Positions 1,410-28,226 of a DNA stretch of 64,000 bases are shown in pieces (position 1 is the first letter of the stretch; the number at the start of each line of letters is the position of its first letter). The translations under genes were made by a program, and so were the position numbers. The notes beneath the pieces are model-generated. The model was given only the letters and a program-made list of their open reading frames with translations, had not been told where the DNA came from and did no database searches. The stretch lies in the NCBI GenBank assembly GCA_965112735.1, contig OZ218950.1:1302001-1366000 (forward strand), read 5' to 3'. Origin of the DNA: Phaeosaccion multiseriatum. Lineage: Eukaryota; Protista; Ochrophyta, other classes.

Positions 1410-1604
1410 TGTTAGAAGTGGCCTAGTTGGGGTCCCTTGGGGACCCAATCAGTAGTGTAACGGCCGGAAAACGGGCCAACTAGACGGTAAATCAGTAATA
1501 AAGAAAGGAAGCGCAGCCTGCGTGTGGGCTGGCTTCCGGGTGCTTGCTTCAGCTTCTGCTCTGCTCTAGCTTGGCTTTGAGGCTAGCTGTCGGTAGTTTC
1601 GACA
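1410..1604 (+). repeat. 3' LTR of copy 2 (195 bp, TG...CA)
   Basis: tgttagaagtgg...agtttcgaca. Differs from the copy-1 LTRs in the aataaa(g/a) tract (1 bp shorter) and at agcttctgct vs agctcctgct. Confidence 0.95.
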
Positions 1605-1615
1605 CACACACTTAC

Positions 1616-2240
1616 CAGTCAAGACTCAGGAAACCCCCTTCAGCGAGGGCCTCGAACGCCTGTGTACCCAGCAGCAAGTTGACGCCTCCCACCAAAGCGA
1701 TGTCACACTTCCCCAGCCGCAAGCTGCTGCAGGCCCCCTCCAGTGCCACCAAAGACGACGAGCACGCCGTGTCGACACTCATGCTCGGCCCTCCGAGGCC
1801 CAGCACGTACGACATCCGATTTGCCGGACTCGCATTGGACATGCCCATGACGGAGTACGCACCCTTGTTCGCATCGTCTACCACTGAGCCCCACTCGCTG
1901 CCGGACATGCCCACGAACACACCGGTGTTGCTGCCATGTAGTGTGTCCTTGCGGTATCCCGCCCTGTGCAGCGCCTCGTACCCCACCTCCAGCATGACGC
2001 GCTGATGAGGGTCCATGGCACCTGCCTCGGCCGCAGAAATGCCGAAGAAGGTGTTGTCAAAAGCCTCCACTCCATCAATGAAGCCCCCTTGCCACTGCTT
2101 CTGACCCTCATCGGCCCAGCGACCAACAGGGCTGGCTCCAATACAGTCTGTCCCTGCACAGAGCATAGCCCAGAAGTCCTCGGGGTTCTTAACCCCTCCA
2201 GGGAAGCGACAGGCGATCCCGACGACGGCCAGCGGCGCCC
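1616..2240 (-). other. N-terminal half of the module-5 KS (continues beyond the retrotransposon, outside the window)
   Basis: PLAVVGIACRFPGG...MDPHQR...VDTACSSS...GFLSLD, then donor GTAAGT starting at 1615. Confidence 0.88.
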
Positions 2241-5200
2241 TTGAGTCAGTGCGGTGCGCTTCAGCAGCGATCGCCGCAGAGCGACTGCCATAGGCTTCCT
2301 CTACCTCGCCAAGCACCTCCGCTTCGATCCACACTGCCAGCGCCGCTACCGTGGGATACGCGAAGAGCACGTCAGTGGTCACTACAGCCCCGAAGCGAGC
2401 CTGTAGACGGCCGCGCAGCTCCACTGTTGACAAAGAGTCAAGACCTGCCTCCATCAAAGGCGTGTTCGCGTCCAGCTCTTCGGCACCCTCCCCAAGTAGG
2501 TCCTTGGCGATATCAAGCACCGCCAATCGCACTGATTGCTGTCGCTCGCCAGGGGGCAGTCTCAAGAGCGCCTCGCGCACTTCATTGTTGAGTTCGGTGT
2601 TTCTCGACGCGCCCGCTGCTGCTGCGACAAGCCCTGACAGAAGGAACGAGCCGCGGGACGCACCCAAGCTGTCTGCAAACTTGGCCCAGTCCATCCCTGG
2701 CAGCACGGCCACATCGCCCAAATACGCTGACGACATCGCAGCGGCATCTAAGGCAGCCATGCCCAGCTCAGATGACACCGTGCCCACACCCGCCAGCTCC
2801 AACTGCTTTTGAACGATATCGAGCTGGGCGGCCATACCCACGTCAGCCCACGGCCCCCACTGCACTGACGTCCCTGTGAGCCCGAGGTGTCGCCTGTGCC
2901 GTATCAGCCCGTCCACTGCCGCATTCGCTGCAGCGTAGTTGGCCTGTCCAGCGTTACCCAGTACTCCCGCCATGGATGTGAAGCAAAAGAAGAAGTCAAG
3001 GCCAGGAGCGCGTCCCTCCTCCTTCGCCCAAGCCAACGAAAGCTCGTGCAAATTTATCGCCCCCTGCACCTTCGGTCGGAACACGTTCGTCATGCTCTCC
3101 GCCGTTTGCTCTCCCAGCAGCTTATCATCCAGCACCCCGGCAGCATGCACCACGCCGCGCACAGGGGGCAGCAGAGGCAGCACGACCCCCAGGCAAGTCC
3201 GAAGTGCCTCAACATCAGCAACGTCACAAGTAGGAGTATGGATCAGCTCCACCTCGTTCTGAAGCTGCTGCCATTGCTCTGTCATGCTCTCAGCGACCTT
3301 CCCACTCCTCGACAGCAGCACCAAGTGACGAGCGCCCCTCGACGCGAGGTGCTGGGCCGTTACGAGGCCGAGAGCCCCCAGACCGCCGCTGATGACGTAC
3401 GTGCCGTCGGACACCACTGGCACACCATACGAGGGGTTGGTTAGCACCACCTTGCCGATATGCTTCGCTTGGCTCATGAGTGCCATAGCCTTCTGGGTAT
3501 CCTCCCTCATGTCAAAGGGTATGGTTGGTAAGGGCTTTACATTGCCAGACATGCAGTCTTCAGCCAGATGCTGCAGCTCGTCGCTTATCCAGCCCGGCCC
3601 ACCCACCGAAAAGTCGAACTCGATAATGGCGTCCACAGCGACGAGGTTGTACCTCACATCGGGACGGGCGGTGTGCATCTGCTCGTGACTCCATACACCT
3701 ATCTTCCCAATCTCCACGAATCTGCCTCCCTCTGTCAGCATGTCCAATGAGAAGGGAATGTAGTCCTCGCTCAGAGAGTTGAGCACCACGTCCACCTTCA
3801 TCTCACCCATGGACTGCTTGAACGCCTCTGCGTCTCTTGAAGACGCAATGTGCTCCACTCCCAGGCTCCGGAGGAAGTCATGCTTCACAGCAGCACCGGC
3901 AGTAGCGTACACCTCCGCGCCCACCCGCTGAGCATACTGCACGGCGGCAAGGCCCACACCGCCCGATGCGGCATGAATCAACACCTTCTCTCCAGCCTTG
4001 AGGTCGTGGAAGGCCTTCACTACCGTCAAGAACACGGTGGGAAGTGCAGCGGCCTGCTCGAAGCTCAGCACGGCCGGCATCACGGCCAGACACACATCAC
4101 TCGTCGTCATATGACTGCGCAAACATCCCGCATCCGCAAAGCCAAACACTGCGTCGCCGACACGGAAGCGCGAGCTTCCTCCCACACTGAGCACCTCCCC
4201 GGCGAACTCTGAGCAAGGATCTCCAGGATCGCCAGGGTACATGTCCAGCACATTCAGCACGTCCCGGAAGTTAAGGCCAACGGCCCTTACGGCCACCTCC
4301 ACGGAGCTGTCATCAAGGGGCTGATGTTTGCCATTGTTCACATCATCACGAAGGGCGAAAGCGTTGGCAATGCTGCCTCTTGCCTTCAAGTCAAGCACGA
4401 AGGGAAGCTGCAGGGGCTGACGTATAAGATGAGGAGCCCAGCACTGTCCGTCGCGTACCCACACATCTTCTGTGGCAGGGAAGGCCAAACCTAAGGCAAG
4501 CTCGCTGTCTTGGACCTTCTTGTCGCTCAGGTCCACCACGCCAATCTGCAGGGAGGGGTGCTCCACCCTCGCAGTCCGCACCAGCCCAGTCACCCAGCTG
4601 TGACGCCAGTCCTCGCCACTTTGGACGCCTCTCGTCAAAACCGTCAGCGGTACCCTTGATGCAGTACACAGGCTCCTAAGTAGAGCCATGAGGGCGTAGG
4701 CCGCTCGTGCTTGCGGGCTTCCTTCTGCGTCTTCTTCGCCAGCTCCGGGTATCAGCACGTACAAGACGCGATCCCACTCGTCCTCTCCGAGAAGAAGAGC
4801 ACCATCATCCCCGGAGGCGTCCATCCGCCCATATCGAGTGTGTACGTCCACGTTCTCCGGAGCACAGCGCCGCACTGCAGCAATGATTGCAGTCTCTCCC
4901 TCCCTCTCGTCCTGCGGAATAACCACGAGCCACTTTTGGCGCGCCGCCGCCTCAGCAGGGTCAGTATCACTTCCAGGGGCCTCCTCTTGTGTGTGTGTAG
5001 ACGACTCAGTGGTCTGCCATTCCAGCGTGTACATCGCCCGACGAAGCGGATTGGGGCGCGCAAAGCCTCTCGCCCGCTGAGTGCGGAACCCACGCATCTC
5101 CACAAGAATCTGCTTGCTATCAAAGTCGGCAATCTTGATATCAAACTTGATGCTGTTGCCCCCGGGCTCCACTTCACCGAGCGTCGTGTGCACCCAAACT

Positions 5201-8200
5201 GTCTCTCCCGTTATGGGGGCAGAAACGATCACCTCGTCAAAGCCAACAGGCAGGAATGGAGCTCCATCCCTCGCTCTCAGCAACTGGCGTGGGATTGCCT
5301 GCAAAAGTGAGTGAGTCGCATTGTCGAGCACCGCAGGGTGCATAGCAAAGCCCATCACCTCCCATGGCTCGCACAGGTCCGAGTCGAGAGCACGCACGAC
5401 CGATAGCACCTCTCCGTCATTGGCGAACACCTGTAAATTCCGCTCAAAGCGAGGGCCATAGTTAAAGTTGGCATCCGCCATTGCCTTGTACAGGCCATGG
5501 GCCAAGTCCTCAGTCCCTACCCGCCCCTTGATTCCCTCTACATCGAGCATGTCACGCGGCTCGGTTCGCTCCATGACAGACACGTGGTCCATCCTCGCGG
5601 TCGCTCCCTTGTCACCCTCAACGCCTCCGAAAAACTGCATGCTTCCATCGCTCGCGTATAGAGCACTCAAGCCGTCACAGACAATAGTATTGCGGCTCTG
5701 CGCTTGGTCCGTGCCCGTGTGCTGGAAACCCTCAATCTCCAATGGAGCCACAAAGCTGGCTCCTTGCAGGACTACCTGCTGCTCCGTCCCGAGCTGTCTT
5801 CCTCCTAGAACAGTGACAACACTCACTTCAATGTACGTTACCCCTGGAATGATCACCACATTGTTGACTGCGTGGTCCTTGAGAAGGTCCTTGATGTGAG
5901 GCGAGAAGGGGCAACAGAGCCGCATTCCGTCTCCCTCTTGGACCACCTCGCCACTGGGCATGAATGCCAGTGGAGGCCTGAACCACGAAATGCTTGGCGT
6001 GTGCGGTACAATGCGCCACGCTCTGACTCGCTGTCCTTCTGAAGAGCATCGTTGAGACTGACGCCCTCTCTGTCGGCATGCGCGGCCGTCCTCCCAGCTC
6101 TGGGACCGGATAGCACGGCGTGAGCATTGGTTCCGCCCGCACCGAAAGAGCTCACGGCAGCAACGAGCGCTCCTGTCCACCCGCCTTGACCCACGGGCTC
6201 CAGGGTCACAGGTAACGTCACGGGGACGCCCGTGAGCTCCAGCTCGGGGTTGATGTCCTTCAAATGCAGGTTCGGAGGGGCGACGCGGTGCTGCAGCACC
6301 AGTACGGTCTTGATGAGGCCTGCAATACCTGCTGCACCCTCCAGATGGCCGATGTTGGCCTTCAGCGCACCTACCACCAAGGCATTTGCCTCGCTGCGGT
6401 CCGGTCCGCAGTACACTGCCTTAAGGGCGCTCATCTCGATGGGGTCTCCCAGCGCCGTGCCCGTGCCGTGCGCCTCCACGAAGCTCACCTCTGCGGGGTC
6501 CCTTCCCGCTTCTGCCAGAGCGGCAGACAGGAGTTGCTGCTGAGCAAGAGGACTGGGTGCCGTCAGACGAGCGCTGGCCCCATTGTGGTTGGCAGCACAG
6601 CCCTCGATCACCGCTAGGACAGTGTCCCCGCTGGCCACAGCATCATCAAAGCGTTTCAGTACAATGGCACCACATCCTTCGCCTCTGACATAACCATTTG
6701 CCGATGCGTCAAACGTCTTGCAGCGCCTGTCGCAAGGCAGAGCAAGGTTGGTGGGGTGTGAGTGGGGTGCAGCGGAAGGTCTTGTTTGACTGTAGAGAAG
6801 ACGCCCAAGAATGAGCTGCACGGAGCAGAAAAGGGAAAAATGCTTCAGAGCACTCAGACCAGAGCGGCCAGTGCCACTTACCAATCGGGGGAGAGGAAGG
6901 TCCCCGCAATCAAGGACTGAAAGGCGCTTTTCCCGAGCAGCAGGTTCACGCCACCGACCACCGCCGAGTCGCACTTGCCCAGGCGGAGGTTGCTGCAGGC
7001 AGCGTCCAGAGCCACCAGGGACGACGAGCATGCTGTCTGCAGCAACGCACTGGGGCCGCAGAGGCCCAGAGTGTAGGATACGCGATTAGCAATGTTCGAA
7101 GCCGTCAGGCCCATTCCGCCGTAGGCGCTCTGAGCAGCGGCATCTCCTGCCACGAAGCCCCAGTCCGTGTCCGACAAGCCCACGAACACGCCGGTGTTGC
7201 TGCCCCGCAGGCTGCTCTTGCTGTGGCCGGCGCGATGGAGGGCCTCGAAGGCCACCTCCAGCATGAGGCGCTGATTGGGGTCCATTGCCTCTGCCTCGGC
7301 AGCACTGATACCAAAGAAGGCATTGTCGAACATCTCCACGCCCTCGATGAACCCTCCCTGTAGCTGCAGCTCGCCCTTATTACTCTCCCACCTGTCGTGT
7401 GGCGCTGCCGTAATGCAATCTCTGCCCTCGCACAGCAGCGACCAGAACTGCTCCGGGCTATTGGCTCCGCCGGGGAGGCGACACGCCATACTCACTACAG
7501 CGATGGGGGATCGAGAGTCCGAGGACAAGCGCTGTCCTGTCAGCACCTCTTTACCCCCCTCTGCATCATCCAGCACCTCAAGAATCTGGGCCTCGAGCCA
7601 CGCGGCCATTGTAGACACTGATGGATACGAGAAGAAGGCACCATTCGAAACGGTGACACCACACCAGGCCTCGACTCGCTTGCGAAACTCCACGGACGCC
7701 ATCGAATCGAGTCCGGCTTCCATCAAGGGTGTCGTTGCTGCCAAGGTGAAGTCCTCGCCAACGCACTCCACCACCATGTCCGTCAGGACCTGCTCGATCC
7801 TCTCCCGCCGTGCTGACTCCGGCAAGAGCAGGAGCTCCTCCCGCACCTCGGCGTTGACGCTGGAGCCCTTTGACGCCTCACCATTTTCTCCGCGGTCGGT
7901 CAATTGCCCGAGGAAATCGCTGTGCACAGGGGCCAAGCTCGCTCGAAATCTGCCCCACCTCATGGCCGGCATGACGGCCACCTCCTGTACGTTGGCTTGC
8001 GCTTGACTTGCAAGGACGGCATCCAGAGCCTTCATGCCCAGCGCCGATGAGATCAGGCCCACTCCGGCCATCTCGAAAAGACTGTGTGACGTCGTAGACC
8101 TCGCTGCCATGCCCGCCTCACCAAAGGGCCCCCACTGAATGCTGGTGCCCGCCAGCTTGAGCTGCTGCCGGCGGTAGCGCATCAGACCATCGAGCGCGGA

Positions 8201-11200
8201 GTTGGCTGCGGCATAATTCATCTGTCCGATGTTACCAAGTATCCCAGCCATAGATGAATACGATATGAAGAAGTCCAAGTTCTCTTCCCTCTCGGCCCAC
8301 TCAAGCGACAGCTCATGCAGGTTCCAAGCCCCTTGAAGCTTTGGTGCGAACACATTCCGCATGCTCTGGTCGGTCTGCCCAGTCAACCTGCGGTCATCTA
8401 GAACCCCCGCTGCGTGAATCACACCCCGAATATGAGGCAGGCCCACCAAAGCCTTGAATACAGCGCCTCGAAGCTGATGCATGTCGGACACATCACAGGC
8501 CACGGCCACAGCGGTGACACTCTCCATGCTCTGCAGGGCCTGCCACAGCTCTGAAACTTCCTCCGCCGCCCGGCCGCTTCGGGATAGGAGAAGCAGGTGT
8601 CGAGCACCCTGGGACACCAAGTGATTCGCCGCCGCCAGACCCAGTCCCCCCAGACCACCGCTGATCAGGTAGGTCCCATCCTCCCTGCACCTGAAGCGAT
8701 CGACTCCTGCCGATGTCAGATGGAGTGCGCTGGGCACCAGCCTCGGAGCGAGGATCTCACACCCTCGAACCAGCAGGTCCACGCCTCGCGCTCCGTCGTG
8801 AGCTTCTGCAGCCAGCGTCACAGCCTGGGAGACAGTTTGGGCTTCCACCTCCTCTACTCTAGGTCGTGCATCCTCAAACTGTGGAGACATGGCACACTCA
8901 AGGTCCAAGTGGTTCACGGCGAGGTCGCCCCGCTCCAGGCGTACGCTTCTCACCAGTCCCACTGCCCAGCTGCCCTGCCAGCCCACACCGCTGTACACTC
9001 CCGTTGTGACCACGGTGATCGGCATCACTGCCTCGTCCCCGTCTAAGCTCTGTACAGTTTGCACAAAGTGGATTGCCCCGTCGGTAGGAGCGCACGTCCC
9101 TGACACCACGTAGAAGAGATGGGCCCCACGTGGCTGCGCGTCCGAGCCGACCGCCTCCACCATGTGCACCTCTACACCATTTGCTGTCGCCGTGCTTCGA
9201 ATAGCTTCCAAGGCTCTGTGGTTGTTCGATGCGTGCTGCCCTTCGGCTGCCTCGGGAATCACGACGAGCCACGGAAGGCTGTCGGGCGCAGAAGCCTGCT
9301 GCGAAGCCGAGGGTACCTCCACCGCCTCCCAATCAACAACATAGAGCGGGCCCTGCTCAACCTCACTCCGCGTCTGAGGTGCATCGGTGGCTCGCGCTGT
9401 GTACCAAGGAAAGGCTTTGCGCGTTGGGAACAGGATGTGCTGCTTGCCCTCACGCTCTTGCTGCTGCACTGTGCTCAGAGCAAATCGAAACGAATCTTCG
9501 GAGTTCTGCCCTCGCGTGAGGGAGGGGATCCACGCCAGGCCCTCGCGACGCTCGCAGTTGGCCCCCATACTGCTCAGCACCGAATTGGGCCCCACCTCAA
9601 CGATGCTCAGGTCAGCCCCCCTCCCGTCTCCCATCCAGTGCTCCACCACCGTGTGGATGCCTTCTGCGAACAGCACTGGCGACAGCATGTGTTGCACCCA
9701 ATACGTCGCCTGCGTCACCTCCTCCCCTCTCACCACCTCACCCGTCACGTTGGACACCAGGGGAATGCGTGGGGCGCTGAGTGACACCTGCCTCAGAGCC
9801 TCCTCCAGCTCACGTACAGCGGGCTCCATCAGAGGAGAGTGGAAGGCGTGCGACACCTCCAGAGCCTTGCAGCCCACCCCATCTGCCGTCAGCCTCTCCA
9901 CCACCTTGTCCACAGCACTGCGCGCTCCAGAGATCACGCTCGCGCTCGGTCCATTCGACGACGCCAGCACCGCCTCGCCTATCCCCCCCGCAGCGTCGAT
10001 CCTTGCCAAAGTCGCCTCTTTGCCTGCCCTCACTGCGAACATCACCCCCTCGCCCTCGGGGCAGGCCTGCATGGCGGCTCCTCGTTTGGCGGACAGCATC
10101 AGCCCGTCCTCCAGCGACATGACGCCGGCCACGCACGCCGCCACTACCTCGCCCAGGCTGTGGCCCATCACCATGGAAGGCTCCACACCCTCCGACTTCC
10201 ACAGCTCACACAGGGCGTACTCCAGCACAAACAGGCACGGCTGGCAGTAGCGTGTCTCCTTCAGCAGCGCTTGTGCAGTCTCCTCCTCCTCCTTCCCATC
10301 CTCAGCGACGGCAGGGTACATGAGCTCCACCACAGATTTATCCAGCCAGGCCCGCTCCATGAGCAGCCTACTGCACCGCTGTATGCACTCGCGGAATACG
10401 CCCTCCTTCTCGTACAGCTCCCTGCCCATGCACACGTACTGCGAGCCCTGTCCGGTGAACAAACACGCCACTGGAGTCTCTGCTTGCCCCGGATTAGGGC
10501 CTGGCGCACCCTCACTCTTCTCCCCATAGCTCCTCAGCAGCACGTGTGCATTAGTTCCTCCCGCCCCGAATGAGCTCACCCCCACCAACATGTCTCCCTC
10601 GTCCTCCAGCTGCACCATCACCGACGGGAGCTGCACGGGGAAGCCGTCCATGTCCAGCTCCGGGTTGACGCTCTTGAGGTGAAGGTTGGCGGGCACGGCG
10701 CGGTGCTGCAGCATCAAGACGGCCTTGATGAGCCCGGCAATGCCCGCCGCACCCTCCAGATGGCCAATGTTGGTCTTGACTGCACCCACCACAAGCCGGA
10801 AAGAGTCGTCACGGTTCTTCCCGTACGTGGCCTTCAGAGCGCTCATCTCGATGGGGTCGCCTAGCGAGGTTCCCGTGCCGTGCGCCTCCACGATGCGTAC
10901 CTCGGAGCCCTCTCGACCGGCCTCACGCAGCGTCGCCTCGATGAGTCTCTGCTGGGCGGCGGGGCTGGGGGCCGTGAGGCGGGCACTGGTTCCGTTGTGG
11001 TTCACGGCACAGCCCTCAATCACAGCGAGGACCGTGTCTCCGGCAGCGAGGGCGTCATCCAAAAGTTTCAGCACAACGGCACCGCATCCTTCACCACGCA
11101 CGTATCCGTTTGCCGACGCGTCGAACGTCTTGCAGCGCCTGAGAAGGGCATGGGAATTGTGGGATGGGGTGAGATAAGTTGACTTGGTAAGGCACTCAAG

Positions 11201-14200
11201 TCGTTCTCACTGTGCGATTTGCCAGAGAGGCGATGGCCAAAGGGAGAAGAGGGGTGAACACAAACAGGAATGGAAGCACTCCACACATAAGCGCACGTAC
11301 CCATCGGGCGATAAGAAACCACTTCCCTTCAGCCTTTCGAAGCTCTGCGTGCCCAGCAACAGATTCACGCCGCCCACTACGGCTGCGTCGCACTTGCCCA
11401 TGCGTAAGCTGCTGCAAGCGCTGTCCAGGGCCACCAGAGAGGACGAGCACGCCGTGTCAGTGGTCATGGACGGGCCCTGCAGTCCGAGCGTGTACGACAG
11501 ACGATTGGACACGCTTGCCCCGGCTGCGCCCATGGTGCTATACGCGCCTGTCGAGGATGAGCCTTCCCCGACTGCTCCCCAGTCACTGCCGCTCATGCCC
11601 ACGAACACTCCGGTCTGACTGCCACTCAGGCTTCGCTTGGTATAGCCCGCATTCACAAGCGCCTCCAGTCCCACCTCCAGCATCACCCGTTGGTGTGGGT
11701 CCATGGCAGAAGCCTCAGGACTGGATATGCCGAACACAGATGAATCGAACATTTCCACGCCGTCGATGAAGCTTCCTTGCCACTGCTGCTCATCCTCCTC
11801 TTTGCTCGCCCAGCGGTCGAGCGGAGCAGGCTGGACACAGTCCTTGCCATTGCTAAGCATGGCCCAAAACTCCTCTGGACTGTTCGAACCACCTGGCAAG
11901 CGGCAGGCCATGCCCACCACTGCCAACGGTGCCTTCGTGTCGCCCCCTTGGTATCCAACCGACTCACTCTCACCCTCATCATCCTCCTCAGATCCCATCA
12001 CCAAGGTTTCCAGCCAGGTAGACAGTGCTAGGACTGAGGGGTGACTGAAGAGCACGTCGTTGGGGACGGACACGCCGAAGCGAGCTTGGAGTCGACTCCG
12101 AAGCTCCACCGTAGACATGGAGTCCAGCCCAGCATCCATCAAAGGCATATCAGCCTCGAGCATGGTGCCCGCTTCACCAATGCATGCCGTTGCGATCTCC
12201 GTGATGACGCCTTCCAGCATGGGCTTCCGACTCGGCTCTGGCATCTCCAGCAGGTCACGCCTCATGGCAGCAGTAACGCTGTTCTCCACCCTGCTACCCA
12301 AGTCCGCACCCTCTACGAGGGCCTCAAGCATTGTCGAGCCACCAAAAGCCCCCGGCGCGGATGCTTGCCAGTCCATTCCCGGCGCCACCAGGAGCTCGCG
12401 TGATGCCGCAGATGGGGCTGACACGCTGGCATCAAGCGCGGCCATACCCAATGCCTTACTGATGAGCCCAACGCCGGCCATCTCCAGACTGGCCATGGCA
12501 ACTTCGGACCGAGCGGCCATGCCAGCTTCGCCCCACGGCCCCCACTGCAGGGCCACAGAGCTGGAGTGACCGAGACGCCGACGATGCTGCATCAGCCCGT
12601 CCACAGCAGCGTTGGCTGCAGCATAGTTGGCCTGGCCTGCATTGCCTAGCACACCTGCCATGGATGTGTAGGACACAAAGAAGTCCAAGGGCCAGGCCAT
12701 CTGCAGCGACAGCTCGTGCAGATTCCAAGCGCCCTCCACCTTCGGCTTGAAGACCTCTTCGATACTCTCGGGCGTCTGGTCCACCAGCAAGCGATCGTCG
12801 AGCACGCCAGCAGCATGGATGACACCTCGCACGGGCGGCATGCTGCTGAGCGCCGTGCCTAGGGCCTTCTCAAGCGACTGCGCGCTAGACACATCGCACG
12901 ATACAGCCCTGGTGCTCACCCCGCCGGGCACGTTGAGAAGCTCCTCCCACAGCGCCTGGGAGTCCGCCTTGACCTTTCCCCCTCGCGAGAGCAGTACAAG
13001 ATGACGAGCTCCTTTATCAGCCAAATGCTTCGCAGTCGCCAGCCCCAGTGCCCCCAGCCCACCGCTGATAACGTAAGTCCCATCTCGCACGACGGGAATG
13101 CCACACTCAGGGCTACTGAGCACAACCTTCCCTATATGCTTCGCAGTTCTGAGGAAGTTCATTGCCTCCGCAAGCTCATCCCTCAAGTCGAACGCCTTCA
13201 CTGGTAGCGCCTCAGCCCTGCCCGCCTCACTGTCCGCTGTCAGCTGCTCCAGCCCAGCGAACGCCCAGCCCTGCTTCTCGGCCTTGAAGTCGTCTGCTAT
13301 CATGGAGTCCAGCTCAATCAGCTCGTACAGCACGTCGGGCCTGGCAGCCTTCATCGCCTCCCTGGTCCACACGCCTCGCTTGCCGATCTCCATGAAGCGC
13401 CCGTTCTTCGTCAGCAGCTCCAGAGAGTAAGGGATGAAGTTGTCGGACAGGCAATTGAGCACCACATCCACCTTTGCAGCTCCCATGGAAGCCTTGAAGG
13501 CCTCCGCATCTCGCGACGACGCAATGTTCTTCACGCCCAGGCCTCGCAAGTAGGCGTGCTTCTCCTCGGATCCAGCAGTGGCGTAGATCTCCGCTCCGAT
13601 GCGCTGAGCAATCTGCACGGCGACCAGACCCACTCCACCTGACGCGGCATGGATGAGCACCTTCTCACCACGCTTCAAGCCAGCGAGTTGCTCAAAGGCG
13701 TGCACCACTGTGAGCCACGCGACAGGCAGCGCTGCCATGTCATCGAAGGTTCTGTTAGAAGGCATGTTGGCCAGACACACGTCACTTGTCGTTACGTGGG
13801 AGCAGAAGCAGCCCTTGTCCGGAAACCCGTAGACCTTGTCTCCCACTTGAAAGCGCGAGTTTCGCGATGCCCGAGTGACCACCCCCGATAGCTCGATGCC
13901 AGGCTGTCCAGGGTCGCCAGGGTACAGGTCGAGCACGTTCAGCACGTCTCTGAAGTTGAGCCCCACCGCCTTGACACAAATTTCAATCTCCCCGTCCTGC
14001 AAGGCAGTGTCTCTCTGGGAAGGGAGTACGTCTCTGCGCTTCAAGCCTCCCTCGATGCTTCCCCTCGCCATGAGATCGAAGGAGTAGGGAAGGCTGACTA
14101 CCGAGGAGCGAGTCAGCTGAGGCGTCTCGCACTCTCCTCCTTGCACACGCACGTCCTGACTCTGAAGGGGAAGACACAACACCAAGCTCATGTCCTCCAC

Positions 14201-17200
14201 ATCCGCTTCCACGACCATGATCTGCATCTCTGGCCGCTCGATACGAACGGAGCGAATCATGCCAAAGACCAGCATGTGTGCCCATCCCTCGCCCCCCCCG
14301 CTCAGCGTGTCGTGTAGTAGCACCATCAAGGGGATTAGTCTCTTGGCCAGCTGCTGCGTTACCGCCAGCAGCTTCTGTGCTTCCTGCTGAGCGGCGCTGG
14401 CTGATGACCTTGCCGTCTGTCCCTCCTCTCTCCCACCGCCGATCACGTACAGCACTCGCGACCACTCGCCCCTCTCCAAGGCCCTCACCACATCCTGGTC
14501 ATAGGCACGCTCCTGCACACGCAGCGTAACGTGCTCGGGCACTGATTGCTCAATACGCTTCACCAACGCTGTAGCTGCACTTACTCTATCTACCAAAGCC
14601 AGCCACGTCTCCTTCTCCACACCATCCTTCCCCGTGGTGGTTGCCAGAGCCAGAGCCTTGTCTGGCTGCCACTCCAGATAGTATAAGGCTCGACGAAGAG
14701 GGTTCAGGAGCGTAAAGCCCTTGGCCCTCTGCAGCTTGACGCCCTTCATGGTCACGAGCACGTACTGGCTGTCAAAGTCGGCAATGACAATGTCAAAGTT
14801 GACGCTGTCGCGCTTGTCGCTGATCTCGGTGAGCACGGTATGCACCCACACCTTGTCTCCTCTGATGGCGCCCTTCGCAACCACGTCATTGCATCCAGCT
14901 GGCAAGAACGTACCACCCTTGGTTAGATCAGAAGGTAGAAGCGCAAGCATGGTGTGTGCGGCACTGTCCAGCACGGCGGGGTGGAGGTAGAATCCACGCA
15001 CCTCCCACTCAGAGCACAGGCTGGGGTCCTGCGCTGTCGATACGGACAGAGCCTGTCCCTCGGCAGCGTACAAGCGCTCTGTCCGCCTGAAGCGGGGGCC
15101 GTAGTTGAAGCCGGCCTTGGCGAACGTGGCGTACAGCTCACCCGACACGTCTCGCTGCCCCACTGCCTCCTGGATGCTCCTCACGTCCATCATTGCAGTA
15201 GCCTCTCTTGCCTCCAGCACCACTGACGCCGCCCTGGCCACAGCCTCACCTGCCTTGCCGCGGGAGCCGCCCGTGATCCGCGTCTTACCGTGGGCAGAGA
15301 GGAACACGTTCACCTCCGAGCATGCCACCGTCGTGGACCCATCCACCATCCGCTCCACGCCAGGTACACAGACGCCTGCCACCTCCAGCGGGGCCGTGAA
15401 GACGAGGCCCTTCATGCGCACCTGGCCATCTGCGGGGAAGGCCTCGCCCCTCAGCAGCGTGGCCAGGGCCAGCTCAATGTAGCCCATGCCCGGCATGAGC
15501 ACCACCCCCCCCACTGCGTGCTCCTGCAGCAGGCCCTTGAGCCTTGGAGAGAATGGGCAGGACAGCAGCACCCCGCCCTTCTCATCTCGCACCCCTCCAC
15601 TCGGAAATAAAGCGTGATTATCGCTCTTGTACCACGGGAAGGCCACACGATTCGGGAAGAGCGCCTCCTCCTTGACGAAGGGGCCCCCATCGCTTTTCAT
15701 ACCAGCCGTCAGTACGGAGTCACTCTTCTCCCCATGGCTCCTCAGCAGCACGTGTGCATTCGTTCCTCCCGCCCCGAATGAGCTCACCCCCACCAACATA
15801 TCTCCCTCGTCCTCCAGCTGCACCATCACCGACGGGAGCTGCACGGGGAAGCCGTCCATGTCCAGCTCCGGGTTGACGCTCTTGAGGTGAAGGTTGGCGG
15901 GCACGGCGCGGTGCTGCAGCATCAAGACGGCCTTGATGAGCCCGGCAATGCCCGCCGCACCCTCCAGATGGCCAATGTTGGTCTTGACTGCACCCACCAC
16001 AAGCCGGAAAGAGTCGTCACGGTTCTTCCCGTACGTGGCCTTCAGAGCGCTCATCTCGATGGGGTCGCCTAGCGAGGTTCCCGTGCCGTGCGCCTCCACG
16101 ATGCGTACCTCGGAGCCCTCTCGACCGGCCTCACGCAGCGTCGCCTCGATGAGTCTCTGCTGGGCGGCGGGGCTGGGGGCCGTGAGGCGGGCACTGGTTC
16201 CGTTGTGGTTCACGGCACAGCCCTCAATCACAGCGAGGACCGTGTCTCCGGCAGCGAGGGCGTCATCCAAAAGTTTCAGCACAACGGCACCGCATCCTTC
16301 ACCACGCACGTATCCGTTTGCCGACGCGTCGAACGTCTTGCAGCGCCTGAGAAGGGCATGGGAATTGTGGGATGGGGTGAGATAAGTTGACTTGGTAAGG
16401 CACTCAAGTCGTTCTCACTGTGCGATTTGCCAGAGAGGCGATGGCCAAAGGGAGAAGAGGGGTGAACACAAACAGGAATGGAAGCACTCCACACATAAGC
16501 GCACGTACCCGTCGGGCGATAAGAAACCACTTCCCTTCAGCCTTTCGAAGCTCTGCGTGCCCAGCAACAGATTCACGCCGCCCACTACGGCTGCGTCGCA
16601 CTTGCCCATGCGTAAGCTGCTGCAAGCGCTGTCCAGGGCCACCAGAGAGGACGAGCACGCCGTGTCAGTGGTCATGGACGGGCCCTGCAGTCCGAGCGTG
16701 TACGACAGACGATTGGACACGCTTGCCCCGGCTGCGCCCATGGTGCTATACGCGCCTGTCGAGGATGAGCCTTCCCCGACTGCTCCCCAGTCACTGCCGC
16801 TCATGCCCACGAACACTCCGGTCTGACTGCCACTCAGGCTTCGCTTGGTATAGCCCGCATTCACAAGCGCCTCCAGTCCCACCTCCAGCATCACCCGTTG
16901 GTGTGGGTCCATGGCAGAAGCCTCAGGACTGGATATGCCGAACACAGATGAATCGAACATTTCCACGCCGTCGATGAAGCTTCCTTGCCACTGCTGCTCA
17001 TCCTCCTCCTTGCTCGCCCAGCGGTCGAGCGGAGCAGGCTGGACACAGTCCTTGCCATTGCTAAGCATGGCCCAAAACTCCTCTGGGCTGTTCGAACCAC
17101 CTGGCAAGCGGCAGGCCATGCCCACCACTGCCAACGGTGCCTTCGTGTCGCCCCCTTGGTATCCAACCGACTCACTCTCACCCTCATCATCCTCCTCAGA

Positions 17201-20200
17201 TCCCATCACCAAGGTTTCCAGCCAGGTAGACAGTGCTAGGACTGAGGGGTGACTGAAGAGCACGTCGTTGGGGACCGGCACGCCGAAGCGAGCTTGGAGT
17301 CGACTCCGAAGCTCCACCGTAGACATAGAGTCCAGCCCAGCCTCCATCAAAGGCCTCAAAGCGTCGAGCTCGATGCCTGCTTCCCCAATGCATGCTTTTG
17401 CCATCTCCATGATTAAAGCCTGCAGCATGGGCTTTCGCTCTCCCTCCGACAGCTCCAGTAGGTCGCGCTTAACCTCGGTAGTTACGCTGTTGCTAGCCTT
17501 GTTCTGCGGTCCAACCATCGAAGCCTCTCTAACGAGAGCATCAAGCATCCCCGGGTTGCCAGCAGCCTGAGAAAAGGCGGGCCAGTCCATGCCAGGCAGG
17601 ACCAAGAGCTCGCGCGATACCGCAGATGGGGCCGACACGCCGGCATCAAGCGCCGCCATACCCAATGCCTTACTGATGAGCCCAACGCCGGCCATCTCCA
17701 GACTGGCCATGGCAACTTCGGACCGAGCGGCCATGCCAGCTTCGCCCCACGGCCCCCACTGCAGGGCCACAGAGCTGGAGTGACCGAGACGCCGACGATG
17801 CTGCATCAGCCCGTCCACAGCAGCGTTGGCTGCAGCATAGTTGGCCTGGCCTGCATTGCCTAGCACACCTGCCATGGATGTGTAGGACACAAAGAAATCC
17901 AAGGGCCAGGCCATCTGCACCGACAGCTCGTGCAGATTCCAAGCGCCCTCCACCTTCGGCTTGAAGACCTCTTCGATACTCTCGGGCGTCTGGTCCACCA
18001 ACAAGCGATCGTCGAGCACGCCAGCAGCGTGGATGACACCTCGCACGGGCGGCATGCTGCTGAGCGCCGTGCCTAGGGCCTTCTCAAGCGACTGCGCGCT
18101 AGACACGTCGCACGACACAGCCCTGGTGCTCACACCGCCGGGCACGGTGAGAAGCTCCTCCCACAGCGCCTGGGAGTCCGCCTTGACCTTTCCCCCTCGC
18201 GAGAGCAGTACAAGATGACGAGCTCCTTTATCAGCCAAATGCTTCGCAGTCGCCAGCCCCAGTGCCCCCAGCCCACCGCTGATAACGTAAGTCCCATCTC
18301 GCATGACGGGAATGCCACACTCAGGGCTTTTGAGCACAACCTTCCCAATGTGCTTCGCAGTTCTGAGGAAGTTCATTGCCTCCGCAAGCTCATCCCTCAA
18401 GTCGAACGCCTTCACTGGTAGCGCCTCAGCCCTGCCCGCCTCACTGTCCGCTGTCAGCTGCTCCAGCCCAGCGAACGCCCAGCCCTGCTTCTCGGCCTTG
18501 AAGTCGTCTGCTATCATGGAGTCCAGCTCAATCAGCTCGTACAGCACGTCGGGCCTGGCAGCCTTCATCGCCTCCCTGGTCCACACGCCTCGCTTGCCGA
18601 TCTCCATGAAGCGCCCGTTCTTCGTCAGCAGCTCCAGAGAGTAAGGGATGAAGTTGTCGGACAGGCAATTGAGCACCACATCCACCTTTGCAGCTCCCAT
18701 GGAAGCCTTGAAGGCCTCCGCATCTCGCGACGACGCAATGTTCTTCACGCCCAGGCCTCGCAAGTAGGCGTGCTTCTCCTCGGATCCAGCAGTGGCGTAG
18801 ATCTCCGCTCCGATGCGCTGAGCAATCTGCACGGCCACCAGACCCACTCCACCTGACGCGGCATGGATGAGCACCTTCTCACCACGCTTCAAGCCAGCGA
18901 GTTGCTCAAAGGCGTGCACCACTGTGAGCCACGCGATAGGCAGCGCTGCCATGTCATCGAAGGACCTGTTAGAAGGCATGTTGGCCAGACACACGTCACT
19001 TGTCGTTACGTGGGAGCAGAAGCAGCCCTTATCCGGAAACCCGTAGACCTTGTCTCCCACTTGAAAGCGCGAGTTTCGCGATGCTCGAGTGACCACTCCC
19101 GATAACTCGATGCCAGGCTGCCCAGGGTCGCCAGGGTACAGGTCGAGCACGTTCAGCACGTCTCTGAAGTTGAGCCCCACCGCCTTGACACAAATTTCAA
19201 TCTCCCCGTCCTGCAAGGCAGCGTGTCTCTCGGAAGGGAGTACGTCTCTGCGCTTCAAGCCTCCCTCGATGCTTCCCCTCGCCATGAGATCGAAGGAGAA
19301 GGGAAGACTGACTACCGAGGAGCGAGTCAGCTGAGGCGTGAGATATCGTCCGTCTCGCACCCAAACGTCCTGCCCCAGTGATGCAATGGCCCAGCACTTG
19401 GGCAGGTCCTCGCTGCCCACGTCCACCACCGTCATGGCCAGCGAAGGGTGCTCGACACGAGCGGTTCGAATCATGCCGTACACCCAGTGATGCCTCCACC
19501 CCTCGCCGCCACTCAGCGTGTCCTGCACCAGCACCATCAAGGGAGCTGGCCTTCGTAAGAGCTGCTGTAGCAACAAAAGGAGTGTCTGTGCCTCTTGGCT
19601 GGGGCTCTGCTGCTTGCCGCCGAACAAGGTGCACACCACACGGCCCCATCCTGCTGGCGCTTCTGAAGCGAGGGTGGAGTCGTCGATGATCTTGACCTCC
19701 CTCTCCGTCAGTGTCACAGAGATGGGCAAGCTCTCTTTCGCTGCCTTGTCCAAGCTGCCACGAGCGCCGCTGGTGAGGAGCAGCCAAGCTTCCTCTCGCT
19801 CTTCCACGTCACCTCTGCTGCGGGAGATGGAATCGTTGGGCAGCCACTCTAGAGAATACAGCGCTCGGCTGACGGGGTTGGTGCGGGAGAAGCCTCGGGC
19901 GAGCTGCATCCGGAAGCGGTTAAGCTGCACGAGCACTTGCTTCGTCTCGAAGTGTGCTATCACGATGTCGCACTCGATCGCAAGAGCTTGAGAGTCCACC
20001 TCCTTCACCACCGCATGAACCCACACCTTCTCGCTCGTGATGGCCCCTCGCACAAGCACCTCTTCGCAGCCGGTGGGCAAGAAGACGGCGGCAAAGGCCT
20101 TGCTCGTCAGCTCCTCCGGCAAGAGCGCCAACATCGTGTGCGCGGCATTATCCAACACTGCAGGGTGGAGGTAGAAGCCGTTGATCTCCCACTCCGCCGA

Positions 20201-23200
20201 TAGGCTGCCATCCATTGCCGCCGCAACCGACAAGGCCTGTCCACTGGCTGCGAACAGGTGCTGCGTTCGGACAAAGCTGGCACCGTAGTCATAACCAGCA
20301 CTGGCAAGCTTGAGGTAGAGCCCCTCGGCGATGTCTTCGTCCCCAACCGTGGCTCTCACCCGCGCCACGTCCAATGTCTCTGCCTCCGTCCTTGCGCGCA
20401 ATTGGAGGGAAGTCGCCTTCGCCACCGTCTCCCCAGCCTTGCCGCGAGGACCTCCGATAAACTGCACGCTGCCGCGGGCAGTGACGAAGGCACTGACTTC
20501 AGAAGCGACCACAGTGGTGGAGCCCTCCACCGTACGGTCCACATCGGGGGCACGAGCGCCTGCAATTTCCAGTGGAGACATGAAGACCAGGCCCTTCAGG
20601 ACCACTTGCCTCTCGCCAGGGAAAGGCTTGCCCTTCAGCAAGGCGGCAAGGCCAATCTCGACGTACCCCATGCCCGGCATGAGCACCACTCCTCCCACCG
20701 CGTGATCTTGCAGCAAGCCCTTGAGCTGAGGGGTGAAGCGGCATGAGAGGAGTGTTCCTCCCTTCTTCTCGACGACGCCGCCGCTTGGTACCATCGCATG
20801 CGCGTGCTGCTCGAACCAAGGGAGCGCACGACGGGTGGGGAACAGAGGTGTGGGCTTGCCCAGTACTGCCGCCACTGCTCTGTCGAACGAGGCGGTGTCG
20901 CTCCCCTCCCGCCGCATGGACGGCTGCCACATCACGTCCGACCTCTCTCCCTCGCATTGCCGCGCCATGTTGATCAGCACAGAGCTGGGCCCAATCTCTA
21001 CCACTCGTACACCCTCAGGCCTCTCCCGGAGCAGCGTGGTGATACTCTCCGCGAACAGCACCGGCGATAGCATGTGTTGCACCCAGTACGCTACCTGCGT
21101 CACCTCCTCAGCCTTCACCACCTCGCCTGTCACGTTGGACACCAGGGGGATGCGTGGGGCGCTGAGTGACACCTGCCTCAGAGCCTCCTCCAGCGCACGC
21201 ACAGCGGGCTCCATCAGAGGAGAGTGGAAGGCGTGCGACACCTCCAGAGCCTTGCAGCCCACCCCATCTGCCGTCAGCCTCTCCACCACCTTGTCCACAG
21301 CGGTGCGAGCGCCAGAAATCACGCAGGCCTGAGGGCCGTTGGAGGACGCCAGCACCACCTCGCCTGCCACCCCCGCAGCGATGATGCTCGCCAAAGTCGC
21401 CTCCTTGCCTGCCCGCACTGCAAACATCACTCCCTTGCCCTCGGGGCAGGCCTGCATGGCGGTTCCTCTCTTGGCGGACAGCATTAGCCCGTCCTCCAGC
21501 GACATGACGCCGGCCACGCACGCCGCCACTACCTCGCCCAGGCTGTGGCCCATCACCATCGACGGCTCCACTCCCTCCGACTTCCACAGCTCACACAGGG
21601 CGTACTCCAGCACAAACAGGCACGGCTGGCAGTAGCGTGTCTCCCTCAGCAGCGCCTGTGCAGTCTCCCCCTCCTCCTCCTCCCCGTCCTCAGCGACCGC
21701 CGGGTACATGAGCTCCACCACAGACTTGTCCAGCCAGGCCCGCTCCATGAGCAGCCTGCTGCACCGCTGCACGCACTCGCGAAAGACCGCACGCTGTTGA
21801 GGCACCAAAAGAGAGACACAGAGAGCGGAGGGAACAAGAGAGAGAGACGAATATGAGAACGAGGGCAGGTGGGCCGAGGTGATGGAGCACAACAGAGGCA
21901 ATGACAAGAGAGGACTGAGACGGAGATGGTGCGCGCAACGAATCAACTAACCTCGTCGTAGAGCTCCTTGCCCATTCCGGGGTACTGCGAGCCTTGCCCC
22001 GTGAAGACAAAGACGTGCGCAGGTGAGGCGACCTCCGTATCCTCACTCTCCTTCGGCGCTTTCGAGACCCCTCCCTCCACTCTCGGCGCAGCGCTGCTCA
22101 GCACCACATGAGCGTTGGTGCCTCCTGCTCCGAACGAGCTTACTCCTGCGTACAGCACCTCCTCGCTGTCATTGGGGTGTCCCTCCTCGCTACCCAATGG
22201 AGATAGTCTCGACGAAGGGAATGCCACCGCAAATCCATCAACACCAATCTCAGGATTGAGCTTGCCGAGGTGCAGATTGCGTGGAACAGCTCGGTGCTGA
22301 AGCGCGAGGATGGTCTTGATGAGTCCCGCGATGCCTGCGGCGCCCTCCAAGTGACCAATGTTGGTCTTGACAGCTCCCACCATGAGTGGGAAAGAGCTCT
22401 CCCGCCCTTCTCCGTACGCGGCTTTGAGAGCGCTCATCTCGATGGGGTCGCCAAGAGCCGTGCCCGTGCCGTGCGCCTCCACGAAGTGAACCTCGCTGCC
22501 CGCTACATCCGCCTCCTCCAAGGCTGCCTCAATCAGTGTCCGCTGTGCGTCTGGACTGGGTGCTGTGAGCCGCATAGAGCGCCCATTGTGGTTCACGGAG
22601 CTTCCCCGCACGACGGCCAGGATGTTGTCTCCGCTGCGCTCCGCGTCGTCAAGCCGCTTCACCACCAAGGCGCCGCAGCCCTCTCCTCGGACGTAGCCCT
22701 CAGCCGCTGCGTCGAAGGTCTTGCAGCGCCTTCGGTAGCAGCACGAGGCAGATGGGGGCAGAGAAGGAAGGACAAGCCGATGAGAGGGATGATGCTTGTG
22801 TTTACCTGTCAGCAAGCCCTCTATGACTCTACTCGAGTTACAGGAGCTCGATGCTCCCCAAGGCCAGCCCCCCCATTCTCCGTTCTCCGTACGTACCAGT
22901 CCTTGGACAAGAAACCTCCCTTGTCGAGCTGCTCGAAGGAACGGGAGCCGAGCAGCAGGTTCACTCCTCCCACAACCGCAGCATCGCACGTGCCGAAGCG
23001 AAGGTAGCGACAAGCCGTGTCCAAGGCAACGAGCGAGGAAGAGCAAAGCGTATCAACCGATATGCTTGGGCCTCGCAAGCCCAGTGCGTAGGACAGGCGA
23101 TTTGCAGGGCAGCCCGCTGACTCGCCCATCATGGAGTGAGCTTTGGTGTCACCATCCTTGTTCAGCGCGGCCCAGTCGCCGTGCTGCATGGAGCCCACGA

Positions 23201-26200
23201 ACACTCCGGTGCTGCTGTTGCGCAGCGTGGCCATAGAGAAGCCTGCCTCGTGCAGCGCCTCGTAGCCGACCTCGAGCATGATGCGCTGAGTGGGGTCCAT
23301 GGCCTCGGCCTCGGCTACGGAGATGCCAAACGTGGCGTTGTCAAACATCTCCACGCCGTCGATGAAGCCTCCGTGCCACTCCTTCGCCGCACCAGTGAGT
23401 CTGCCCGAGGGCATGGCGGTGATGCAGTCCTTTCCCTCCAGCAGCATGGACCAGAAAGCGTCGGGACTGTCTGCGCCTCCGGGGAAGCGGCACGCCATGC
23501 TCACTATTGCCAGCGGGGCAGAAGCGTCGCCCCCCCCTTCAGCCGATGGCATCCTCCTGGACAGGCGTAGGCTGCTCGCACTTCCCTCCATGAGCGCTGA
23601 GCCCAACCACTCCGCCAAGGCCGCCACGGTGGGGTGGGCGAAGAGGGCGGCACTACTAACGGGAATGTCCGTGAGCAGGTGCAGACGCTGCCTCAGCTCC
23701 ATGAGCGCCAACGAATCCATGCCAGCCTCCATGAGAGGTTTGTCCATGTCGATGCCGACAGAGCCTGCCGTGCTGGAGAGCGCGATATCGGAGATGACGG
23801 ATCGAAGCCTCTCTTGGCGTTCAGCTGGACTGACACCGCGGAGCTTTACTGCCAAGGAGTTTTTTCCGGCCGCCGATGTCGGTGGGGCGGGCAGCAGCTT
23901 GAAGACCTTTCTGCTCGTGAGCGGGGAGGCTCTGACGTTGGTCTTCTCTGCGTGTGAGATGGCCGTCCCCTCCAGGATGACGTGGGCATTGACACCGCCA
24001 AACCCAAAGGAGTTGACAGCTGCAAAAGGAGCAGAAGTAACCACAGCGAGCAGAAGTGCATGGTGAGAACGGGTTCAGCCATTATCCATCATACGATAGC
24101 TCATACCCTCTAAAGTCCTCCTTAACTTGTCTCAAGAAGACGCAAGTGAGTGAGTGGGAGTGGGTGAGTGAGTGATTGGGTGGGTGGGTGGGTGAGTGAG
24201 TGAGTGAGTGAATGAGTGAGTGAGTGAGTGCGGGAGTGAGTGAGTGAGTGAGTAAGTGAGTGAGTGAGTGAGTGAGTGAGTGAGTGAGTGAGTGAGTGAG
24301 TGAGTGAGTGAGTGAGTGAGTGAGTGAGTGAGTGGGTGAGTGGGTGAGTGAGTGAGTGAGTGAGTGAGTGAGTGAGTGAGTGAGTGAGTGAGTGAGTGAG
24401 TGAGTGAGTGAGTGAGTGAGTGAGTGAGAGAGTGGCTGAGTGACTGAGTGAGTGATCACAGGAAACGTTTTTGAATAAGGGCCCCAACGCACCTCCGATT
24501 CGGGTGGAGATGGGGGTCATGCGTCCGGGGATGGGCAGCAGAGCGCTGTTGCCCTCCGTCTTCAGTGCAGGGCTCAGCGTGGACAGGTTGAGGTTGGGAG
24601 GCGCTTGGACATGCCTGAGCACCAGCACCGTCTTGATGAGCCCCGCAATGCCTGCCGCAGCCTCCGCGTGACCAAGGTTGGTCTTGATCGCTCCAACGAC
24701 GAGACGGCGGGCTGTTGCCAGGTCGTGGTCTCCGTAGGTGCCGGCGATGGAAGCCCACTCCGTGCGGTCCCCGAGGGGCGTGCCCGTGCCGTGCGCCTCG
24801 ATGAAGCTCACGTCGGACAGAGCGATGCCCGCCTCTGCTACGGAGTCCAAGACCGCGGCCTTCTGTGCCGCTTCGTTGGGAGCGGTGAGGGTCGTGCCGT
24901 GGCCGGTGTGATTGATGCAGGAGCCTCGAATCACCGCCAATATGTTGTCTTGGGCCTCTATGGCGTCTTCGTGGCGCTTTAGCACGACAGCGCCGCAGCC
25001 CTCTGCTCGCAGCCGCAGCCAGGGCACAAACAGCAAATGGAGGTGACTGGAGGGTGAGCTAGGGGGTGGTCGAGCCGTGCTCATCAGGTTTATAGAACAA
25101 GGACAATCTCAGACCCAAAGAAACACTCTCCGCTCATCCTGCACTTCTCTCCTTCCCTTTCCTCCCCCCTTCCTCTCCTTCCTCTCCCTTTCCCTTTCTC
25201 CTTATCTGTGCCCCTGCCCCTCTCCGTATCTCCGTCCCGCCCTCTCCCTCTCTGTCCCGCTACCTCTCTCGCTCTCCCGATCTTTCTCTCCATCTCCCCT
25301 TCTCTCCCCCCCTATCTCATTTCCTCTCCCTCTCCCTCTCCCGCTCCTGCTCCCTCTTCCCCTCTCTCCCTCTCCCCGCCTCTCCCTCTCCCTCTCTCCG
25401 CCCTCCTTGCGGAGCTGGAAAGGGCGGGCCGTCATCATAATTAGAAGCACTGCGGTAAGCTCCTCCCTTTCTCGTCCTTTTAGTCTTCTCTACAGTCTCG
25501 CAGGCGCCGCTTGTGCTCACCTGCCCGCACGTAGCCGTTGGCAGCGGCATCAAAGACCATGCACTTGTCTGACAGCAAGTGCAGCGATGACATGGCGGAG
25601 AAGGGCTCGGGGTTGGTCATGATGGACACTCCTCCCGCCAGGGCCATGTCGCAGTCGCGGCTTTGGAGGCCTCGGCAGGCCTGGTGCACTGCCACGAGAG
25701 AGGAGGAAGAGGCCGTGTTGATGGTCTGCGAGGGTCCAGTCAGACCGAGGGCGAAGGAGACCCGATTGGCCACGAGAGCCTCTGAAGCGCCCGTAGCAAC
25801 GTACGGTCCAGGAGCGTGAGACTGCATTTTGGACATCCAGTCTCCGTTGCCGCACCCGATGAACACTCCTGGACGTTCGAGAAGAGGACTTTGTGGTGAG
25901 GTATACGGTGTGGTCAGTCACCATGCATCAGAGCATCAGAGCAGTTTCTCCCGCTTCGTCTGATTGTTAGAAGTGGCCTAGTTGGGGTCCCTTGGGGACC
26001 CAATCAGTAGTGTAACGGCCGGAAAACGGGCCAACTAGACGGTAAATCAGTAATAAAAGGAAGGAAGCGCAGCCTGCGTGTGGGCTGGCTTCCGGGTGCT
26101 TGCTTCAGCTCCTGCTCTGCTCTAGCTTGGCTTTGAGGCTAGCTGTCGGTAGTTTCGACAACCCGGAAGACCCGAAAGACACAGGTCTGAGATCCAGCTT

Positions 26201-28191: not shown

Positions 28192-28226
<35 letters not shown>

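Follow-up and report, generated by a model that had tools for sequence, protein, structure and literature searches.

Introduction

Eukaryotic assembly lines that mix modules with and without an integrated acyltransferase (AT) have already been described. In LasC/LasD, the fungal polyketide synthase (PKS) of Lasiodiplodia theobromae that makes strasseriolide C, ATs are found in modules 2, 4 and 7 only, the loader is AT-less and there is no trans-AT; the lasC and lasD genes alone give the full product, and in vitro malonyl passes from the acyl carrier proteins (ACPs) of module 2 to the loader ACP (PMC13749307). Mixed cis-AT/AT-less transcripts have been reported in Karenia brevis (contig 28414) and for the 7-module PKS of Gambierdiscus polynesiensis (PMC5725682). 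Algal multimodular PKSs were found to be mostly AT-less by Shelest et al. (2015), who proposed that ATs were lost after module duplication, at a time when photosynthetic heterokonts were known mainly with iterative cis-AT PKSs (PMC4661987). Here we describe a PKS gene of a stramenopile-like alga, Phaeosaccion multiseriatum, located in a stretch of 64,000 nucleotides (hereafter the window) corresponding to C1:1302001-1366000, where C1 is contig OZ218950.1, in a 67-Mb, 22-contig genome. The gene combines AT-bearing and AT-less modules, and this pattern is real. We favor, as the probable explanation, that this ~81-kb hybrid gene, which joins a PKS to a nonribosomal peptide synthetase (NRPS), encodes genuine AT-less modules that elongate the chain with malonyl obtained from ATs of the same synthase, and that the copy in the window is a young pseudogene.

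Organization of the gene

Searches were run exon by exon, combining Pfam scans of exon-sized open frames with a tblastn map made with the window's own domains. The long open frames at 1612-24044 are all on the minus strand and, according to Pfam, each spans from the C-terminal half of one ketosynthase (KS) to the N-terminal half of the following KS. The introns splitting the KS are of 155-167 nt, GT-AG, in phase 2, and occupy a constant codon position (between GFLSPDG and RCKTFD). GT-AG introns at one conserved KS codon indicate that the gene is eukaryotic and transcribed from right to left. It extends over ~81 kb (C1:1260514-1341315), with its 5' half at window positions 1-39315 on the minus strand. 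The start Met, at 39315 (MGSGPTRSQKGGHRRGDIAIVGMACRFPGG), is kept in four paralogs. The features of this half, with modules M1 to M5 behind the loader and the dehydratase (DH), enoylreductase (ER) and ketoreductase (KR) domains as found by Pfam and tblastn, are the following:

38692-39315, minus strand: gene start, with exons 1 and 2 of the loader KS (KS_L); KS_N pieces placed by tblastn at 39264-39142 and 38784-38692
25875-25525 and 24940-24584, minus strand: remaining KS_L exons
23604-23765, minus strand: loader ACP (GMDSL); the stretch from KS_L to it contains no AT
17219-23516, minus strand: M1, KS-AT-DH-ER-KR-ACP
23516-22887 and 22620-22267, minus strand: M1 KS exons; AT at 22014-21934 and 21793-20876, with GHSLG and HAFH
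20764-19904, minus strand: M1 DH; ER at 19210-18332, KR at 18295-17744, ACP at 17407-17219
12011-17137, minus strand: M2 (AT-less), KS-DH-ER-KR-ACP
17137-16499 and 16237-15884, minus strand: M2 KS exons, Cys-His-His intact
15580-14729, minus strand: M2 DH; ER at 13996-13118, KR at 13081-12530, ACP at 12199-12011
7595-11929, minus strand: M3, KS-AT-KR-ACP
11929-11291 and 11029-10676, minus strand: M3 KS exons, identical to the M2 KS
10402-9488, minus strand: M3 AT (GQGSQ start at 10453), with GHSLG and HAFH; LFPTRKAFPW at 9433-9404
8677-8120, minus strand: M3 KR; ACP at 7780-7595
2326-7507, minus strand: M4 (AT-less), KS-DH-ER-KR-ACP
7507-6884 and 6617-6261, minus strand: M4 KS exons; linker from 6134
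5928-5077, minus strand: M4 DH; ER at 4311-3442, KR at 3405-2848, ACP at 2514-2326
1616-2235, minus strand: N-terminal half of the M5 KS; exon end at 1616 (...SLDW followed by gtaagt)
22730-22896 (M1), 16347-16508 (M2), 11139-11300 (M3), 6727-6881 (M4) and 1615 onward (M5), minus strand: KS introns

In the domain map of the flank fetched to the left of the window, M5 continues with AT-KR-ACP and is followed by M6 (KS-DH-ER-KR-ACP) and M7 (KS-AT-KR-ACP), and the alternation of AT-bearing and AT-less modules covers all seven PKS modules ahead of the first NRPS module. The ATs of M1, M3, M5 and M7 match PF00698 and show GHSLG and HAFH, i.e. they are of the malonyl type. M7 is followed by a condensation-adenylation-peptidyl carrier protein (C-A-PCP) module, a multi-intron KS with an ACP, a KS-AT-KR-ACP module, a second C-A-PCP module and a hexapeptide-repeat tail that ends at C1:1260514. 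A first-pass annotation made from the window's letters had given the M1-M4 domain order with an AT-less loading module, the malonyl (HAFH) type of the two ATs in view and a eukaryotic origin, all of which were recovered here; it had also asked whether the alternation continues to the left, and it does, in what turned out to be the 3' part of the gene. The portion behind M7 lies at C1:1260514-1277446 (minus strand), and the tail that closes the line is of 883 aa, with hexapeptide repeats of the left-handed β-helix kind. An in-frame stop in a KS at C1:1270647 was discarded as a lesion, since it is an intron donor read through. A single exon comprises the C-half of a KS, the reductive loop, the ACP and the N-half of the next KS, resembling the recombination units discussed for PKS evolution.

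Modules without an acyltransferase

The motif L[FY]PxRxxFxW is found behind the AT in AT-bearing modules and straight after the KS in AT-less ones. This post-AT linker motif, which packs back on the KS, is a feature of canonical cis-AT modular PKSs. In M2, GTNAH of the KS end (15766) is followed by a 30-residue linker (15751-15662) and then by LFPNRVAFPW (15661-15632), while in M3 370 residues, including the AT, separate the KS-end and post-AT landmarks. M4 and M6 have another linker, of 35 residues, ahead of LYPTRQAFRW, and align with AT-bearing sister modules from the motif onward; in this copy the M4 motif reads LYRTRQAFR and then runs into a frameshift. From KS to DH the sequence is continuously coding, M2 and M6 each having a single open frame and M4 being broken solely by that 1-nt frameshift, and since M2 and M4 are coding throughout there is no room for a hidden AT exon. 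A hidden or divergent AT in these modules was rejected on this ground, with linkers of 30-35 residues. A bacterial-type KS-AT linker or AT-docking remnant of ~100 residues is absent from these 30-35-residue junctions, PF16197 covering just the KS-proximal part; even in AT-bearing modules the KS-AT linker is of ~22 residues (from GTNAHVLLRS to ...LFTGQGSQ).

The AT has been cleanly excised in M2, M4 and M6, leaving remnants of the KS-AT linker and of the post-AT linker. The first-pass annotation had proposed such an excision, and the linker remnants on both sides and the short distance from KS to motif bear it out. It had placed LFPxRxAFPW in both M2 and M4, which is correct for M2 (LFPNRVAFPW) and not for M4, where the motif is cut by a 1-nt deletion. 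The gene is neither trans-AT throughout, as M1, M3, M5 and M7 have an AT, nor canonical cis-AT, as M2, M4 and M6 have none.

Source of malonyl

Stand-alone ATs were sought by whole-genome six-frame searches with PF00698 and TIGR00128, which gave 72-78 scored matches. No dedicated trans-AT was found genome-wide, by a type of search that is weak for intron-rich ATs and that a short-exon AT could escape. The matches outside modules were a FabD-like multi-exon gene on contig C5 (58-61 kb, GLSLGEYS), whose exons scored E ~0.006, and an AT on contig C11. The C11 match to PF00698 was rejected as a discrete trans-AT, given that it belongs to a multi-exon gene with KS exons upstream of it. This KS-AT gene (C11:2361001-2369000) has a CAFH motif and belongs to a different type I PKS/fatty acid synthase lineage.

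An AT-bearing module of the neighboring gene has an ACP identical to those of M4 and M6, and M2-type ACPs match M1-type ones; the comparison revealed no ACP specialization of AT-less modules. This identity makes loading by embedded ATs plausible. The first-pass annotation had suggested that each embedded AT also loads a neighboring ACP, one AT serving two modules, or that a separate trans-AT helps. Loading of a neighboring ACP by an embedded AT remains plausible in view of the identical ACPs, the fixed ratio does not agree with the paralogs described below, and the search for stand-alone ATs, weak for intron-rich genes, found the FabD-like gene on C5 and no dedicated trans-AT.

The alternative that survives best is a true trans-AT supply, in which the housekeeping FabD/MCAT (C5:58-61 kb) or a missed, dedicated multi-exon AT would load the AT-less modules and the embedded ATs would serve their own modules only; we consider it unlikely, although it deserves attention. 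A FabD-like multi-exon gene does exist, but FabD normally acts in organelles on type II ACP. Its weak detection shows that intron-rich ATs can be missed, yet no second free-standing AT appeared among the scored matches. Trans ATs are generally assumed for algal AT-less PKSs (PMC4661987), and the bacterial haliamide PKS, with two modules lacking an AT, has a stand-alone AT (PMC6274090); LasC/LasD, however, functions without one. The lack of an AT-docking remnant after the KS, where the linker is of 30 residues, and the identity between the ACPs of AT-less and AT-bearing modules also argue against it, and supply from the ATs of the same synthase is the reading we retain.

The loader raises the same question. 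In KS_L the active-site Cys is changed to Ser (NTASSSS) and both His are kept, as in the paralogs aligned there (this gene, P1 and P2). KS_L is possibly a KSQ-like decarboxylating starter domain, with its ACP loaded in trans.

Functional state of the AT-less modules

All extension KS keep Cys-His-His, those of AT-less modules included, and the AT-less M2 and the AT-bearing M3 have identical KS; a KS0 or non-elongating KS in AT-less modules was rejected on these motifs. The AT-less modules also keep the DH His, the NADPH-binding motifs of ER and KR, the KR Tyr and the ACP Ser. Between pairs of paralogs, the AT-less exons show dN/dS values of 0.26-0.49 over ~1,720 codons, a test of limited power in paralogs that are young (dS 0.06-0.14) and exchange sequence. 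These values indicate that the AT-less modules of intact paralogs are under purifying selection. Because constraint on a KR is to be expected only where a β-keto group is formed, we read the AT-less modules as elongating; most likely, they would elongate and fully reduce the chain.

That these modules are instead non-elongating, being pass-through or split modules that finish the reduction for the preceding KS-AT-KR module, or being skipped, seems improbable to us. A KR-only AT module precedes an AT-less DH-ER-KR module in M3/M4, M5/M6 and equivalent pairs, and the KS behind the KR-only module is of a distinct type (QTACSSS), as could be expected under this alternative; but M2 follows the fully reducing M1, and the two or three AT-less modules found in a row in paralogs would have no task. 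The intact KR under constraint would have no substrate, and the conserved KS triad, with an M2 KS equal to that of elongating M3, points in the same direction. An assembly artefact, with ATs lost or modules mis-joined in a region where kilobase internal repeats of 96-100% identity are hard to assemble, can practically be dismissed, since the AT-less junction is unique sequence in two diverged forms, is shared by four genes on two contigs (dS 0.06-0.14), where it recurs in the same modules, and is also of the type found in a Chrysoparadoxa protein.

Paralogs and origin of the alternation

The genome contains ~20 related giant, intron-split hybrid PKS-NRPS loci. Genome-wide, 64 of 113 full KS (~57%) are followed by an AT, and every locus with AT-less modules holds at least one. 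If L stands for the loader, A for an AT module and o for an AT-less module, the pattern L A o A o A o A is found in this gene and at C2:495875, and a shorter L A o A o A on contig C13. Other loci read L A o o A A o A, L A o A A o A, o o o, or A A A A A. The strict alternation and the one-AT-per-two-modules rule that had been proposed from the window do not hold across this family, which includes lines with two or three AT-less modules in succession and with several AT modules side by side. The AT-less internal modules all show DH-ER-KR spacing, and the 11 mapped in detail are all of that type.

In this gene the alternation arose by duplication: M4+M5 and M6+M7 are 9.6-kb tandem duplicates with 94-98% identity. 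A second repeat involves the first modules:

10512-14125 and 15720-19339, minus strand: internal direct repeat of 3.6 kb, 96.5% identical, covering ER-KR-ACP-KS

This repeat links M1/M2 to M2/M3, and its end coincides exactly with that of the KS, the point at which M3 has an AT and M2 has none. The alternation is a by-product of the duplication of an [AT-less + AT] bimodule and reflects no functional rule. A single origin of AT loss was rejected, as the DH tree has two distinct clades that pair AT-less with AT-bearing sister modules, which requires two changes of AT state or, alternatively, recombination. That ATs are shared across the family and were cleanly excised repeatedly, with at least two changes in the DH tree and again in Chrysoparadoxa, is a proposal that we put forward tentatively.

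Condition of the window copy

The gene in the window carries lesions and insertions that set it apart from its intact paralogs:

between 5986 and 5985, minus strand: 1-nt deletion in the post-KS motif of M4 (blastn against the 98% identical M6, and three paralogs)
25965-38456, plus strand: long terminal repeat (LTR) retrotransposon copy 1, 12.5 kb, antisense in a KS_L intron
1-1604, plus strand: 3' end of LTR retrotransposon copy 2, which extends left to ~C1:1290811

The M4 frame is intact at the matching site in the paralogs on C2 and on the plus strand of C1, C1(+). A further deletion, of 10 nt, lies in M6 just past the active-site Cys (C1:1286712). The LTRs of copy 1, of 196 nt, are 100% identical to each other, and comparison with an uninterrupted paralog places its insertion point ~65 nt upstream of the next KS_L exon. 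Its open reading frame (ORF) at 31911-38222 encodes reverse transcriptase, RNaseH, 3'-5' exonuclease and integrase according to Pfam. Copy 2 was inserted 11 nt into the M5 KS intron, with a target-site duplication around GTGTG, as deduced from the junctions against the uninterrupted M7 intron; it includes an integrase ORF at 10-1371, and its reverse transcriptase, exonuclease and integrase (C1:1298461-1302219) are 100% identical to those of copy 1. The LTR retrotransposon is young. Its exonuclease is a DNA_pol_A_exo1 domain placed between RNaseH and integrase in pol, and its 1129-aa ORF at 28597-31986 had no Pfam match.

Taken with the deletions, these insertions make the gene in the window a probable young pseudogene. 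Its twin at C2:494-543 kb is laid out identically, with one open frame per exon and free of retrotransposons, and the C1(+) paralog is likewise open. A neighboring near-twin (C1:1177648-1235912, minus strand) has two consecutive AT-less modules. It is a second decaying copy, with its frame broken by a stop near 1229057 and by a frameshift in M2. The rest of the window (39316-64000) has lower GC and mixed skew, and the ORFs at 40194-43517 on the minus strand had no Pfam match.

Assembly-line model and its implications

As encoded, the line would consist of a KS(Cys→Ser)-ACP loader, seven PKS modules, C-A-PCP, KS-ACP, KS-AT-KR-ACP, C-A-PCP and the hexapeptide-repeat tail. The ACPs of the AT-less modules and of the loader would receive malonyl from ATs embedded elsewhere in the same synthase, either by direct loading or through an ACP-to-ACP relay, as proposed for LasC/LasD. 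With all seven modules elongating, the PKS part would make a 3,7,11-trihydroxy-C16 acyl chain and hand it to the NRPS part.

Several points weigh against this interpretation. The protein and its product are predicted from sequence, the loading by embedded ATs is argued by analogy, and decarboxylation of malonyl-ACP by a Cys-to-Ser KS is assumed. Multi-exon ATs were detected weakly, so that a dedicated trans-AT made up of short exons may have escaped the six-frame search. The signal of constraint comes from the young, sequence-exchanging paralogs mentioned above, and the DH tree may reflect recombination among such paralogs. As for the state of the window copy, both deletions could be assembly errors, which is unlikely for the 10-nt one.

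The ~20 loci, in which sister modules differ by clean AT excision alone and have identical ACPs, constitute a natural test bed for AT sharing, and are also suited to work out in which sequence of steps AT-less algal PKSs evolved. If ATs are indeed shared, the family would capture the transition from cis-AT to AT-less organization that Shelest et al. inferred, and AT sharing would be directly testable. The window copy is of lower value for this purpose, having two deletions and two retrotransposons, and the intact twin on contig 2 is preferable for study.

Comparison with described systems

The first-pass annotation took bacterial assembly lines to be usually uniform, with cis-ATs or with trans-ATs from end to end; such uniformity does not hold for eukaryotes, as evidenced by Karenia and Gambierdiscus (PMC5725682), LasC/LasD (PMC13749307) and the Chrysoparadoxa protein. 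LasC/LasD, described in 2026, is the sole characterized case for AT-less eukaryotic modules and points to supply from embedded ATs. The algal genes share with it a eukaryotic multimodular line with embedded ATs in part of the modules and an AT-less loading module. LasC/LasD is fungal and rich in methyltransferases, with tandem ACPs, a start at an ACP and a thioesterase end, whereas the algal genes have a loader made of a Cys-to-Ser KS and an ACP and no methyltransferase, show DH-ER-KR in every AT-less module, and include NRPS modules as well as a hexapeptide-repeat tail. Moreover, LasC/LasD has been characterized biochemically, while the algal genes are known here from their sequence.

With the dinoflagellate PKSs (PMC5725682) this gene has in common a protist type I organization, AT-bearing and AT-less modules on one polypeptide and integrated ER domains. 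The dinoflagellate cases are transcripts only, with one AT and one AT-less module or six AT-less modules and one AT, and no periodicity; their gene families lack genomic mapping, unlike the algal loci described here. The best database match was a partial protein of Chrysoparadoxa australica, P0001 (37% identity), a fragment arranged as ACP-KS-DH-KR-ACP-KS-AT-DH, with a KS-AT linker as short as that of the alga, a direct junction of the same kind between KS and post-AT motif, and two nearly identical KS, one with and one without an AT. An apicomplexan-like protein shows the same mixed layout and junctions, and in the database search matches over the full junction were limited to the Chrysoparadoxa protein and a few others. 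Toxoplasma TgPKS2 also lacks the ~100-residue KS-AT linker domain of bacterial type (PMC9301873). Bacterial lines such as that of haliamide (PMC6274090), and hybrid cis/trans-AT lines of bacteria, likewise have single AT-less modules within otherwise cis-AT lines, but they come with a separate gene for a stand-alone AT, and their KS-AT linker domains are long, in contrast with the ~22 residues of the algal linker.

Finally, the locus agrees with the AT-displacement model of Shelest et al. (PMC4661987) in that evolution proceeds mainly by duplicating modules and losing integrated ATs. It differs from the PKSs of that survey, almost wholly AT-less, in that ~57% of the KS in this genome retain an AT and the six-frame searches yielded no displaced free-standing AT. 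The locus represents a mixed stage, with the duplication of modules preceding the loss of ATs.

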